Below, piece by piece: positions 37,401 through 43,343 of a DNA stretch of 64,000 bases. The DNA lies in NCBI GenBank assembly GCA_964035545.1, contig OZ037765.1, positions 33,541,504-33,605,503 on the forward strand. The letters are read 5' to 3'. Every line of letters starts with the position of its first letter. Position 1 is the first letter of the stretch. The notes below the pieces were generated by a model that was not told where the DNA came from, did not search any database, and was given only the letters and a program-made list of their open reading frames with translations. Source of the DNA: Bugula neritina. Taxonomy: Eukaryota; Animalia; Bryozoa. The translations under genes were made by a program, and so were the position numbers.

Positions 37401-40400
37401 TCGATCCATGCTTTACCAGGTTGTGATTAAATTAGCACTTTTATGGAAAAAGAAAGAAACCAATTTATATTCCTTTTTGAAAAAGCATTCAGAATGTGCT
37501 GAAAGCTTTGAACAGCTTAGAAAGTATACTTCAAGTCACAACTGCCAGTACCTAAATATAGAAAGTTTGTAAATAAGCAGAGATGATGTTTGACATGCTG
37601 TATTATGTTCTCCAACAAAGATGACTCAATAAAATAGGCAGCATTCCCCACAAAAATGAATTTATGCTGCACATAAAATATTTATCAAACAGCCACCAAG
37701 AGAAGAGCAACAATTGCTTTTGTCAATGCACGATTTCCAGATTATTATCAGTAGAAATTGTTGAGAATGGCAGCATCACTATAAAATGACTGACTCAAGC
37801 CCGTGTGCCCAAAAAATGCATTGAAAGACATATTATAATGCTGCTGCTATACATTCTGATATGAAAAACAAAAATTTCAAGTGCACTGGTGTAGGTCAAT
37901 GCAAGGATTGTCTAAACAGAAGATACTTTGGAAGAAAATATACAAATGAAATTAATGACAGTTTTATAATTATGGTAAGAAAACAATGTACAATAAAACA
38001 CTACGTTGAAACATCTGTTACATAACTTGCTTCAAACAAGAAATTTTACAATATATACATGTTTCAATCATCCCAATATTTTTGTGATTTTGAAATAAAT
38101 TTAAAGAATCTTGTTACTTTTTACAGATATTTAGTGATTACCGCCAGATCAATAGAAGACTCATTTGGTAGGTTCTCAAAAGCTGTCAACATGTAACCAT
38201 AGTATATGTCTTTTAAACACTTAATTCTTTGACACATCAGCATAAAAAGCTTAAGTGATCTTACATAACTAGCTTCTTTAATAAACTTATTACGTAGGCT
38301 TCTCCCAAATGTATTACGTAACATCCATATAGCAAACATGTAATTTGATTGACAACACAGTTTTGAATTAAATAGTGTTTTGAAATTTATAAATTCAGAA
38401 TCAGTGTTGAAATATAAAAAAGAAACAACAAATTTTAGTTTCTCACCTACTTTTACTGTTTATATAGAAGGCTTGTTATTAGTGGATGCTATTCTGCACG
38501 ATCCTCGGTTACTTTTATTACCCATTTGAGATGCCAACTTGCTTTTTTGCAATAGCTTGAGTTAAAATAAAGATAGACTTTTAGAGTATGTAAATTTGGA
38601 ATCAGCACAAACTGTTGATCTAGAAACAACTATTTTTGAGTGGCCACCTAGTAAAGTGTAATGAGGTGAGTTTTTGAGCACTTTTTGGGAGGTTACTTTT
38701 AGACTGACACTGAACAGTCAGGTTGTGTACAGGTAATATGACTACGCTTTGTATCCTGTATATTATTTTATATACTTTAAGTGGTGTATATATATATATA
38801 TATATATTAAAGAGAGGTAATAGTAATATTGTGAAGTAGTAATAAACATGTGACACACAAACCTCTCAGGTAGACTGAATATACCACAGTGACTCATATT
38901 CAACTGTTTAAGTGATGTGAGTGATGACACAACATCTGGTACTGTGTTGAGAGTATTCCCTCTTAAGTTTAGTTCCTCTAACTGAGTCAGCTGACTGAGA
39001 CTGTAATATAAAGTTATACTATGACAAAAGAATAGAATTACACATAACATGTAGTTTATGCAGAAAAGAGATATGCATGTGACCACAACTGATATTTTAC
39101 AAATATATCATTGGTTGTTTGTCAAAGTCATAATATATCCTAGTTAACCTGGTGGCCTTAGCACCTAATATGATGCTAAGAAGTTTACCGGGTTTTCTCT
39201 TGCACGTCATAATTAAAAATGCATGAATTACTCATGAAATTATCACGAGTCCTACAAATTTTATTCATGGTCATTTGAGAGGAGGGCTCTAAATAATTAC
39301 AGGGAGCTCGGGCTGAGTACAGAGATTATCGCTATATATACCCTATGGCCTGAATATTATTGTATATACTATATAAGTTGTGTATAAATATAAGTTACAG
39401 AGTAGTTATAATAATGATGTTGTGAAGTAGTAATAAACATGTGACACACAAACCTCTCAGGTAGACTGAATATACCACAGTGACTCATATTCAACTGTTT
39501 AAGTGATGTGAGTGATGACACAACATCTGGTACTGTGTTGAGAGGATTCCCTCCTATGTCTAGTTCCTCTAACTGAGTCAGCTGACTGAGCCTGTAATAT
39601 AAAGTTATACTATGAAAAGAGAATAAAATTACACATAACATATGTATTTTATACAGCACAGAAATATGCATGTGACCACAACTCCACATTTTACAAATAC
39701 ATTATTGGTGATTTGTCAAAGTTATATCCTAGATAAAGCGATTCCTTTAGCATCTGATATGGCGTTTACAAATATACTGGGTTTTTGTGTATGCCATATT
39801 ATTAAAAATGTTTGATGCACGTATGAAATTTTCACGAGCCTTAATAATTCTCCCAATGGTAATTCGAGAGGAGGGCTCCCTAAATAATTACACTCTACTC
39901 TTACTATTTAATTGTATAACACAGGGAACTCAGGCTGAGTACAGAGATTATAGCCACACCCTATAGCCTTTATATTATTTTATATACTATATAAGTTGTG
40001 TATAAATATAAGTTACAGAGTACTAATAATGATGTTGTGAAGTAGTAATAAACATGTGACACACAAACCTCTCAGGTAGACTGGATATTCCACAGTTCCA
40101 CATATTCAACTGTTTAAGTGATGTGAGTGATGACACAACATCTGGTACTGTGTTGAGAGGATTGTCTCTTATGTCTAGTATCTCTAACTGAGTCAGCTGA
40201 GAGAAACTGTAATAAAAAGTTATACAATGGCAATAGAATAAAATTACACATAACATATGTAGTTTATGCAGAAAAGAGATATGCATGTGACTCCAACTGA
40301 TATTTTACAAATAAACCATTGATTATTTGTCAAAGTCATAACATCCTGGTTAAACTGGTGGCTTTAGCACATAATATGATGCTTAGAAATTTGCTGGGTT

Positions 40401-43343
40401 TTCTCTTGCACGTCATAACATCAAAAATGCTTGAATTACTCATGAAATTTTCACGAGTCCGAATAATTCTTCTCATGGTCATTCCAGAGGGAGGTTATCT
40501 AAATAGTTACACTTTACCCTTACTATTTAATTGTATAACACAGAGAACTCATGCTGAGTCCAGAGATTATAGCCACACTCTATAGCCTGGATATTATTTT
40601 ATATACTATATAAGTTGTGTATAAATATAAGTTACAGAGTAGTAATAATGATGTTGTGAAGTAGTAATAAACATGTGACACACAAACCTATCAGGTAGAC
40701 TGGATATTCTACATTCTCTCATATCCAACTGTTTAAGTGATGTGAGTGATGACACAACATCTGGTACTGTGTTGAGAGTATTGTACTCTATGTCTAGTAT
40801 CTCTAACTGAGTCAGCTGACTGAGACTGTAATATAAAGATATATTAAGACAAGAGAATAAAATTACACATAACATGTATTTTATGCAGCACAGAAATATA
40901 CATGTGACCACAACTCATATTTCACAGATATATTGATTATGGGCAAAAATATTACCCAGATAAAGCGGGCTCTAGCACTTTAAATGGCTTTATACTATAA
41001 TACATATATACATATATACATATATATATATATATATATATATATATATATATATATATATATATATATATATATGTATATATATATATATATATATATA
41101 TATATATATATATATATATATATATATATATATATATATATATATATATATATATATATATATATATATATATAGCCTATTCCAGGAAAGTGAAAGGATA
41201 ACTTGGTAGTGGATTCAATACAATTTGTGGAATTATTATAGAACTTGTTTGTGAGCAGCAAGCTAATGTCTCATCCCGAATGGCAGAATGCTTAATACTC
41301 CACGAAACTATTACTATTAATACTTTATAGGTGCAGCAAACAAGCCATTACCTCTACTGCCCTTTCATCATAAAAGTCATTAGTTTCAGCAACATCAAAC
41401 ATGTGACACACAAACCTCTCAGGTAGACTGGATATACCACAACTCCTCATATACAGCTGTTTAAGTGATGTGAGTGATGACACAACATCTGGTACTGTGT
41501 TGAGAGGATTGTATCCTATGTCTAGCATCTCTAACTGAGTCAGCTGGGAGAGACTGTAATATAAAGTTATACAATGACAAGAGAATAAAAAATTTGACAT
41601 AATATTTTATGCAATACTGAAATATGCATGAGGCCACAACTCTGTATTTCACAGATATATTAATTACAAGTAAAAATAATACCCAAATAAAGTAGGCTAT
41701 AGCACTTCATATGACTAGATACTAATATGTATCTACTAGAAAGTATACAATATGCTAAGCTTTAAACATGGTCATAATTACACTCATACCCTTACTATTT
41801 AATTGTATAACACAGGGAACTTAGGCTGAGTACAGAGATTATAGCCACACCCTATAGCCTGGATATTATTTTATATACTATATAACTTGTGTATAAATAT
41901 AAGTTACAGAGTAGTAATAATGTTGTGAAGTAGTAATAAACATGTGACACACAAACCTCTCAGGTAGACTGGATATATCACATCCACTCATATACAGCTG
42001 TTTAAGTGATGTAAGTGATGACACAACATCTGGTACTGCGTTGAGAGGATTCCTTCCTATGTGTAGTTTCTCTAACTGAGTCAGCTGAGAGAGACTGTAA
42101 TATAAAGTTATGCTATGACAAGAGAATAAAATTACACATAACATGTATTTTGTGCAGCACAGAGATATGCATGTGACCACAACTCCGTATTTTACAAATA
42201 CATGTTGATTCTTTGTCAAAGTTACAATATGCCAGCTAAACTGGTGGCTTTAGCACCAAAGAAGACACCTACAGATATATACCGGATTTTTTTGTGCAAC
42301 TCATAATGCCAAAAGTGTTTCAATCATTGAAATTTTCACTAGTCCTATAAAAAATCTACTCATGGTCACTATGTGCAGGAGGATAGTTAGAAATATAATT
42401 ACACTCTACCCTTACTATTTAATTGTATAACACAGGGAACTCAGGCTGAGTACAGAGATTATAGATACACCCTATAGCCTGGATATTACATTATTATATA
42501 CTATATAAGTTGTGTATGAATATAAGTTACAGAGTAGTAATAATGATGTTGTGAAGTAGTAATAAACATGTGACACACAAACCTCTCAGGTAGACTGGAT
42601 ATTCTACATTCTCTCATATTCAACTGTTTAAGTGATGTGAGTGATGACACAACATCTGGTACTGTTTTGAGAGTATTGTTTCCTATGTCTAGTTTCTCTA
42701 ACTGAGTCAGCTGAGAGAGACTGTAATATAAAGTTATGCTATGACAAGATAATAAAATTACACATAACATGTATTTTGTGCAGCACAGAGATATGCATGT
42801 GACCACAACTCCGTATTTTACAAATACATGTTGATTCTTTGTCAAAGTTACAATATGCCAGCTAAACTGGTGGCTTTAGCACCAAAGAAGACACCTACAG
42901 ATATATACCGGATTTTTTTGTGCAACTCATAATGCCAAAAGTGTTTCAATCATTGAAATTTTCACTAGTCCTATAAAAAATCTACTCATGGTCACTATGT
43001 GCAGGAGGATAGTTAGAAATATAATTACACTCTACCCTTACTATTTAATTGTATAACACAGGGAACTCAGGCTGAGTACAGAGATTATAGCCACACCCTA
43101 TAGCCTGGATATTATTTTATATACTATATAAGTTGTGTATGAATATAAGTTACAGAGTAGTAATAATGATGTTGTGAAGAAGTAATAAACATGTGACACA
43201 CAAACCTCTCAGGTAGACTGGATATACCACAGTAACTCATATTCAACTGTTTAAGTGATGTGAGTGATGACACAACATCTGGTACTGTGTTGAGAGTATT
43301 CCATTCTATGTGTAGTTTCTCTAACTGAGTCAGCTGACTGAGA
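25801..43343 (-). CDS. LRR-Roc-COR-caspase fusion protein (MFHAS1-like Roco with a C-terminal caspase), 5'-partial, at least 1389 aa
   Basis: Exons in transcript order: eight 138-nt LRR cassettes (43206-43343, 42583-42720, 41957-42094, 41416-41553, 40688-40825, 40069-40206, 39454-39591, 38863-39000). Then 30265-32294 (LRR+Roc+COR), linker exons 30024-30101 and 29592-29734, p20 exons 28232-28405 and 27907-28138, and intersubunit linker/p10 exons 26725-26871, 26173-26282 and 25801-25953 (TGA). All junctions are GT-AG and in phase with no internal stop. The weakest acceptor is at 28405. Confidence 0.72.
29200..29415. repeat. Imperfect (CA)n/(CACG) microsatellite
   Basis: Directly visible; intronic. 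Confidence 0.95.
30265..32294 (-). CDS. Large exon: terminal LRRs + Roc GTPase + COR domain
   Basis: LRRs are followed by the Roco hinge [20 protein letters not shown]-loop [10 protein letters not shown]3 DFGGH and G4 LTHLD. The COR region has [28 protein letters not shown] and C-terminal CPHC. A GTGAGT donor at 30264 precedes the ORF's stop codon. Confidence 0.92.
33040..34125 (-). mobile_element. Degenerate LINE reverse transcriptase fragment in the intron between the LRR array and the Roc exon
   Basis: [50 protein letters not shown] and [18 protein letters not shown], split across frames. Confidence 0.88.
34545..35642. repeat. 19-bp minisatellite (tacattactatacatagta), about 1.1 kb
   Basis: Directly visible; more than 50 copies with recurring variants. 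Confidence 0.95.
36900..37925 (+). mobile_element. Possible highly decayed DNA-transposon fossil with a C-terminal Cys-rich (CXC-like) tail
   Basis: Fragmentary translation ..[30 protein letters not shown] resembles the ends of CXC-tailed transposon proteins. Many stops and frameshifts; boundaries uncertain. Confidence 0.3.

Follow-up and report, generated by a model that had tools for sequence, protein, structure and literature searches.

The closest described parallels to the system reported here are the ROCO genes of brown algae. In Ectocarpus one 72-nt exon encodes each leucine-rich repeat (LRR), these exons are shuffled, and positive selection acts on the repeat domain's concave face (PMC3341825), a precedent that an earlier account of the present DNA made from its letters alone (the preliminary description) had stated correctly; shuffled LRR exons, together with alternative splicing, have been extended to other brown algae (PMC11378527). 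Here we analyse a comparable array in an animal. The window, by which we mean the whole 64,000-nt stretch studied (positions 33541504-33605503 of contig OZ037765.1, here C1, in a 216-Mb assembly), carries on its minus strand eight cassette exons, E1 to E8, each exactly 138 nt long and encoding two 23-residue LRRs. They belong to an apparently intact gene of the bryozoan Bugula neritina that is predicted to encode an LRR-Roc-COR-caspase protein, and their variation is almost confined to nine codons on the predicted binding face. To date, brown algae are the only organisms from which hypervariability of the binding face on modular LRR exons, combined with Roc-COR, is known.

With the LRR-ROCO genes of Ectocarpus and Saccharina the bryozoan gene shares the LRR-Roc-COR order, equal-length and frame-symmetric LRR exons that are duplicated in tandem and shuffled, positive selection at concave x positions, and an arrangement in clusters that include pseudogenes. 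It differs from them in having two repeats per exon instead of one (138 against 72 nt), in its animal host, in the caspase that follows, and in that no inverted or intronic pseudo-cassettes are present in the bryozoan window. The LRRs of plant NLR and R genes are similar in that hypervariability is confined to the solvent-exposed x residues of the beta-strand motif, in clustered birth-and-death evolution with unequal crossing-over and gene conversion, and in a cell-death output, which for the bryozoan is a prediction; plant NLRs, however, have NB-ARC where the bryozoan protein has a Roc GTPase and COR switch, and they have neither the fused caspase nor LRRs split into cassette exons. Lamprey VLR genes also combine LRR cassettes, a conserved framework and a variable concave face, but their cassettes have no splice sites, and an incomplete germline gene receives copies of them in somatic cells, whereas the bryozoan cassettes are ordinary exons. 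All eight sit inside the gene with canonical ag/gt sites, and the window gives no sign of VLR-type somatic rearrangement.

The nearest named homologues in animals are Roco proteins of the MFHAS1/MASL1 type, which have the same LRR-Roc-COR order. MFHAS1 is single-copy and without a caspase, unlike the bryozoan gene, and to our knowledge cassette-exon hypervariability has not been reported for it. Finally, bacterial AP-GTPase/COR proteins have rapidly evolving LRRs and variable effectors (PMC8195603), and these systems and the NLR inflammasomes have in common with the bryozoan gene a fast-evolving LRR sensor, an NTPase switch and a death effector. In contrast to the inflammasomes, the bryozoan protein has no NACHT, and its caspase is predicted to lie in the same chain rather than being recruited via CARD or PYD. 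A literature search found no bryozoan or other animal Roco family with such exons and no Roco-caspase fusion.

Anatomy of the cassette array

The eight exons, all on the minus strand, are distinguished by one variable peptide in each of their two repeats. E1 (43206-43343) encodes KLHIEWNT and NMSYCG, E2 (42583-42720) KLDIGNNT and NMRECR, E3 (41957-42094) KLHIGRNP and YMSGCD, and E4 (41416-41553) MLDIGYNP and YMRSCG; these are followed by E5 (40688-40825; ILDIEYNT and DMRECR), E6 (40069-40206; ILDIRDNP and NMWNCG), E7 (39454-39591; ELDIGGNP and NMSHCG) and E8 (38863-39000; ELNLRGNT and NMSHCG). The preliminary description had listed these exons and their variant peptides: coordinates and length are correct to the base, the translations agree letter for letter, and the two blocks it called invariant (SQLTQLE and a second, longer one) are indeed invariant among the eight. 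At the nucleotide level 32 of the 138 columns vary, concentrated in columns 26-56 and 98-123, while columns 57-97 contain a single difference, which is synonymous.

All eight cassettes have the same boundaries, ttacag on the 5' side and gtttgtgt on the 3' side. A Ser codon (AG/T) is split at both ends, with its third base at the start of the exon and its first two bases at the end. Both flanking introns are therefore in phase 2, and any cassette could be added or dropped in frame. When the window was searched with a hidden Markov model built from the family, no further, inverted, decayed or pseudo-cassettes were detected elsewhere in it, introns included.

Two smaller features of the array may be recorded here. 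The conserved Ser at cassette codon 2 (e.g. 43337-43339) is encoded by AGT in E1, E5, E7 and E8 and by TCT or TCC in E2, E3, E4 and E6, a three-base synonymous switch that does not follow intron similarity. The intron after E4 contains a (TA)92 microsatellite (40991-41174), and the middle part of this intron is unrelated to the other inter-cassette introns.

Variation is concentrated in nine codons

To place the eight exons among their relatives we used 264 kb (the window plus 20 further stretches, L001-L020) of a 0.9-Mb cluster. This sample contains 37 cassettes in arrays of 1 to 8, of which 35 are canonical; all 35 are open and have correct splice sites, and their peptides are distinct in 34 of 35 cases. 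Hypervariability (entropy >=1.39 bits) was seen only at codons 9, 11, 13, 14, 16, 34, 36, 37 and 39, and every other codon had an entropy of <=0.81 bits. Exactly the same nine codons, and no others, reached 1.3 bits in 31 cassettes taken, as single-exon open reading frames (ORFs), from independent JGI contigs. Recovery of the same nine codons from 35 cassettes of this genome and 31 independent ones shows that the pattern is not due to chance. An assembly artefact was considered and ruled out, as the introns are distinct, no two of the 35 exons have the same first variable patch, and independent assemblies show the pattern again.

In LRR proteins the x residues of the xxLxLxx strand motif face the concave, solvent-exposed surface. 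When the cassettes are read in the register LxxLxLxxNxL, the nine sites correspond to x3, x5, x7, x8 and x10 of the first repeat and to x5, x7, x8 and x10 of the second, so that seven of the nine fall within the strand motif. The variable codons are thus the x positions of xxLxLxx plus x10, in agreement with the preliminary description, which had put the variation on the predicted ligand-binding face. An AlphaFold model of one exon, computed from the 35-row alignment, is weak (predicted local distance difference test, pLDDT, 62) and serves only to place the strands, at residues 9-12 and 32-35. Of the residues found at the nine sites, 65% are charged or polar and 20% are Gly or Pro, the others being aromatic (7%) or aliphatic (8%).

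Tests for selection on the variable codons

Counting by the Nei-Gojobori method in the eight exons gave proportions of non-synonymous (pN) and synonymous (pS) differences of 0.114 and 0.067 over the whole exon; at the nine hypervariable codons pN rose to 0.40, and at the remaining codons pS was 0.034. For the 35 exons we defined twelve x positions a priori, from structure alone. Non-synonymous diversity (piN) at these positions was 0.309, and synonymous diversity (piS) at the other codons was 0.077.

For likelihood tests we used our own GY94-type codon model on an IQ-TREE tree. With 35 exons dN/dS (omega) was 1.68 for all codons (model M0), 3.64 for the a-priori x positions (likelihood-ratio test against omega = 1: 18.98, p = 1.3e-5) and 0.65 for all other codons (p = 0.08). 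The eight exons alone yielded omega = 2.41 for all codons (M0; p = 0.019) and 2.73 for the x positions (p = 0.059). When sites were fitted one by one in the 35 exons, the non-synonymous rate beta exceeded the synonymous rate alpha at codons 14, 16 and 37 (p < 0.05) and at codons 34 and 36 (p < 0.1). Independently of any tree, the 66 distinct codons present at the nine sites encode 57 distinct residues, meaning that hardly any synonymous variants exist there. The preliminary description had made dN/dS above 1 at the variable x positions the test of its proposal, and with 35 exons this is what we find.

Exchange between exons and paralogues

Only 5 of 485 positions distinguish the intron that follows E1 (42721-43205) from the one that follows E2 (42095-42582), an identity of 99%, and yet the exons beside them differ at 13 of 138 positions (E1 against E2; Fisher p = 6e-6) and at 14 of 138 (E2 against E3; p = 2e-5). 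From column 119 of one exon, across the intron and as far as column 31 of the next, the sequences are nearly identical, and this tract ends at the variable patches. It is difficult to see why homogenisation should halt at the edge of the patches unless selection removes patches that have been converted. In all 595 cassette pairs, while the divergence of the flanking introns ranges from 0.04 to 0.48, that of the 27 hypervariable nucleotides lies at 0.26-0.40 and that of the framework is constant at 0.03-0.06. The distances of upstream and downstream flanks are correlated with r = 0.16 only.

In contrast to the first patch, which is unique to each exon, the second occurs as 27 haplotypes, some of which are common to different genes; that of E2 is identical to the second patch of a paralogue cassette at C1:33643162, 59 kb away. 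A simple unequal crossover was tried as the origin of E2 and ruled out, since its two patches match neither E1 nor E3. The three conserved blocks (columns 8-25, 57-97 and 119-138 plus the first 12 intron bases) would be obvious places for the exchange junctions. Because the genealogies of the flanks are decoupled from the patches, and because patches are common to paralogues, much of the pattern is ascribed to recombination. The diversifying selection proposed in the preliminary description is supported, with caveats given below, but recombination has to be added to it.

Origin of the diversity

Taken together, we think it likely that the array results from germline diversification of the binding face, brought about by selection combined with exon duplication and with exchange between paralogues. 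Each exon consists of a nearly identical nucleotide framework and two short variable patches over the predicted solvent-exposed x positions. Diversity would be encoded in the germline and would arise through tandem exon duplication and loss, through short-tract exchange among exons and paralogous genes with junctions in the identical framework blocks, and through selection for amino-acid differences, and against homogenisation, at the nine patch codons.

Several points count against this interpretation. Synonymous pi in the exons is about 0.08, and the framework is at 0.02-0.03, compared with 0.2-0.37 in the deep introns; with exon synonymous diversity so far below that of the introns, dS is depressed, by homogenisation or by nucleotide constraint, and omega is inflated. 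Measured against intron diversity, only codons 14 and 37 (0.63-0.65) are clearly above the neutral level. The likelihood tests employ a single tree for recombining 138-nt sequences and a codon model of single steps, although many of the differences are multi-nucleotide. Mapping onto the structure depends on the canonical LRR register, the sole folded model being that of one exon, at the pLDDT given above. Finally, activation of the caspase by the LRR arm and the existence of a variable ligand are predictions from sequence.

Some of the same observations would be expected if the nine sites were simply unconstrained surface that drifts, with conversion and purifying selection holding the rest of the exon in place. 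At seven of the nine codons piN (0.27-0.39) is about equal to deep-intron pi, the abnormally conserved synonymous sites of the exon inflate omega, and mosaic cassettes indicate frequent conversion. Conversion tracts, however, cannot skip patches of 3 nt, so neutral patches should be homogenised with the adjoining framework and introns, whereas the patches are still 0.26-0.31 divergent where the flanks differ by 0.04-0.08. Moreover, within the same codons the non-synonymous rate is 3.6-fold above the synonymous one, nearly every distinct codon is a distinct residue, and codons 14 and 37 are near saturation. Neutral relaxation with concerted evolution is for these reasons unlikely. The cassettes also provide a clean natural system in which to study the coexistence of recombination-permissive framework blocks and selected patches within 138 nt.

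The syntenic locus in a second assembly

We compared the window with the syntenic locus (L021) of another B. neritina assembly, GCA_010799875.2. The syntenic flanks are 95-96% identical, confirming that the host is an animal, as the preliminary description had supposed, and a bryozoan. The two loci are collinear over some 11 kb on the upstream side, at 92-96% identity, and over some 9 kb on the downstream side, at 87-95%. Identity is unevenly distributed: against the 95-96% of the outer flanks, the gene body and downstream intergenic DNA reach 79-89% (window 22267-37297, L021 16369-27764).

The syntenic locus has four cassettes where the window has eight. The array is thus not monomorphic, at least between two assemblies, and no cassette of one locus is identical to one of the other: they differ at >=6 of the 27 hypervariable nucleotides and at 0-8 of the 111 framework nucleotides. 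The Roc-COR ORF is intact at the syntenic locus as well. Between the window and syntenic copies of this exon, taken as a whole, dN/dS is 0.32; Roc and COR have values of 0.22-0.29, and the terminal LRRs have 1.17. Purifying selection on Roc-COR indicates that the gene is functional. The syntenic array is closer to a paralogue about 85 kb away in the genome of the window (C1:33659825-33669786; 90.7% identity) than to the window array (83%), and so is its Roc-COR exon (93.5-94% to the same paralogue, about 90% to the window copy). The pattern points to ectopic exchange between paralogues or, alternatively, to an old divergent haplotype.

The host gene encodes a predicted LRR-Roc-COR-caspase protein

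Protein and domain searches were run exon by exon; all coding exons described here are on the minus strand. A putative first coding exon of 52 codons plus 2 bases (45841-45998), ending AA/gt with a phase-2 donor, was located by tblastn with residues 1-55 of the B. neritina model P0004 (80% identity). No domain was recognised in it, and the 52-residue N-terminus that it would encode includes the hydrophobic stretch LLTSLCSFQISFGFALM. The cassettes themselves match Pfam LRR_1 (22.1 bits, cut-off 20.6) as well as LRR_8 and LRR_4, and their LRR register aligns with the PDB proteins LIC11098 (1.6e-21), LRRD1 and SHOC2 (both ~1e-17).

The last LRRs, the Roc GTPase and COR are encoded by one large exon of 686 open codons (30265-32294, its 3' end at 30265 being approximate). 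Its acceptor ag, at 32296-32295, is in frame with any cassette, its likely donor is CCCT/gtgagt, and one common frame links the first exon, all cassettes and the Roc exon. The Roc domain has a P-loop and a THLD motif (LTHLDK). Its Pfam match (PF08477, E = 5.8e-5) scores 23.7 bits, just below the curated cut-off of 27, and protein relatives of the exon also carry PF08477; COR-A (PF16095) matches residues 325-497 (E = 1.1e-8; 35.6 bits, the cut-off being 35.3). The motifs and the two Pfam matches identify the gene as a Roco, in line with the preliminary description, which however missed the continuation of the protein into a caspase. Beyond the large exon lie a small linker exon (30024-30101), an acidic linker exon (29592-29734) and two exons of the caspase p20 subunit, the first at 28232-28405 (PF00656, E = 4.7e-8) and the second, with the His (LMSHGG) and Cys (VVACRSG) motifs, at 27907-28138 (PF00656, E = 6.2e-14). 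A third caspase exon (26725-26871) contains a linker and the start of p10, and the exons were traced 3' as far as here. The GT-AG junctions leading from Roc-COR over the two linkers to at least three caspase exons are all frame-consistent.

The closest protein matches are hypothetical proteins of B. neritina with 78-86% identity, and in two of these models (P0007 and P0012) COR continues into a caspase. A more distant match, an 'MFHAS1 homolog' of the bryozoan Watersipora, is 28-31% identical across the Roc-COR exon.

The 6.5-kb intron between E8 and the Roc exon holds a 19-bp minisatellite of 58 copies (34544-35642), which is also found at the syntenic locus (L021 17345-18568). ORF fragments resembling the reverse transcriptase of non-LTR retroelements occur at 33039-33857 (-), 47346-49165 (+) and 5606-5860 (-), one of the three being within the same intron.

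A large clustered family and its possible role

A first look through the genome for the 138-nt exon yielded at least 347 matches. Forty of these were scored, with identities of 88-100%, and every one of the forty is on C1, at 32.79-33.67 Mb. With the Roc-COR exon at least 134 first-look candidates were obtained, on C1, C3, C4, C5, C6 and C7. The 65 of these that were scored are mostly intact and about 40% identical to the window copy; eight of the 65 belong to the subfamily of the window (81-100% identity), and two of these eight have stops. For a genome of 216 Mb, this number of Roc-COR candidates amounts to a very large expansion of Roco genes.

The host gene would accordingly be one member of a large clustered bryozoan family, in which the cassettes, as constitutive-looking and frame-symmetric exons, would form the LRR sensor arm of a single-chain protein. 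Binding of a variable ligand to the concave LRR face may change the Roc-COR switch and thereby activate the fused caspase, with cell death or immunity as the output, analogous to the logic of NLRs and inflammasomes or of plant NLRs. The gene may, as the preliminary description inferred, have a role in non-self recognition. If the family works as its anatomy suggests, it would represent a third design of sensor, NTPase switch and death effector beside animal NLR inflammasomes and plant NLRs. It would then be an invention separate from that of the algae, made in a phylum of colonial animals with no immune or allorecognition genes known so far.

A cell-death regulator with an endogenous task, for instance in the cyclic degeneration and regeneration of zooids, could show purifying selection on Roc-COR and a caspase effector just as well, its LRR face co-evolving with self ligands or with paralogous partners, and nothing in our data links the gene to infection or allogeneic contact. 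On the other hand, the numbers of Roc-COR candidates and cassette matches, the clustering, the pseudogenes, the turnover in copy number and the hypervariability of the binding face are features usual for non-self recognition families and unusual for housekeeping regulators, and we regard a purely endogenous function as quite unlikely.

Possible alternative splicing of the cassettes

The equal length of the exons, their phase-2 introns on both sides and the common frame of first exon, cassettes and Roc exon would also suit an array whose main purpose is somatic diversity, in which cells include different subsets of cassettes by alternative splicing. Alternative splicing of LRR exons is known from brown-algal ROCOs (PMC11378527), and the public B. 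neritina model P0004 joins exon 1 straight to the Roc exon, skipping four cassettes. The same model, however, also removes the Roc domain from an intact ORF and is thus probably an annotation artefact. The splice sites of the cassettes are all identical and equally strong, suggesting constitutive inclusion. There is no docking/selector complementarity of >=12 nt between the unique flanking introns and the inter-cassette introns, and no reverse-complement match of >=12 nt is common to >=5 inter-cassette introns, as a Dscam-type arrangement of docking and selector sequences would have. Spliced cassette proteins were not found in protein collections: a search of representatives returned generic LRR proteins of 33-49% identity, and a word-index protein search returned single-exon genomic ORFs of JGI contigs only. 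We therefore judge it very unlikely that the array serves mainly somatic diversity. Most improbable of all is that cells or zooids use different cassette subsets, by regulated exon choice or somatic exchange, and so draw on a germline library of binding patches for a somatic repertoire of death-triggering receptors, which if true would be a new kind of anticipatory or allorecognition system in a lophotrochozoan.

Other features of the window

On the plus strand a myocardin/MRTF-like gene (12127-20394) has an RPEL-like motif, a SAP domain (PF02037, E = 3e-11) and Gln-rich repeats. It is followed by a single-exon ORF of 235 codons on the minus strand (21205-21912) with a weak methyltransferase match; this ORF, which is conserved at 95% in L021, is the downstream limit of synteny. 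A (TG)197 microsatellite lies at 23638-24032. Finally, a retroelement insertion at 58076-62324 (-) stands out by its GC content of 54-60%, against a background of 30-35%, and contains long gag/pol-like ORFs.

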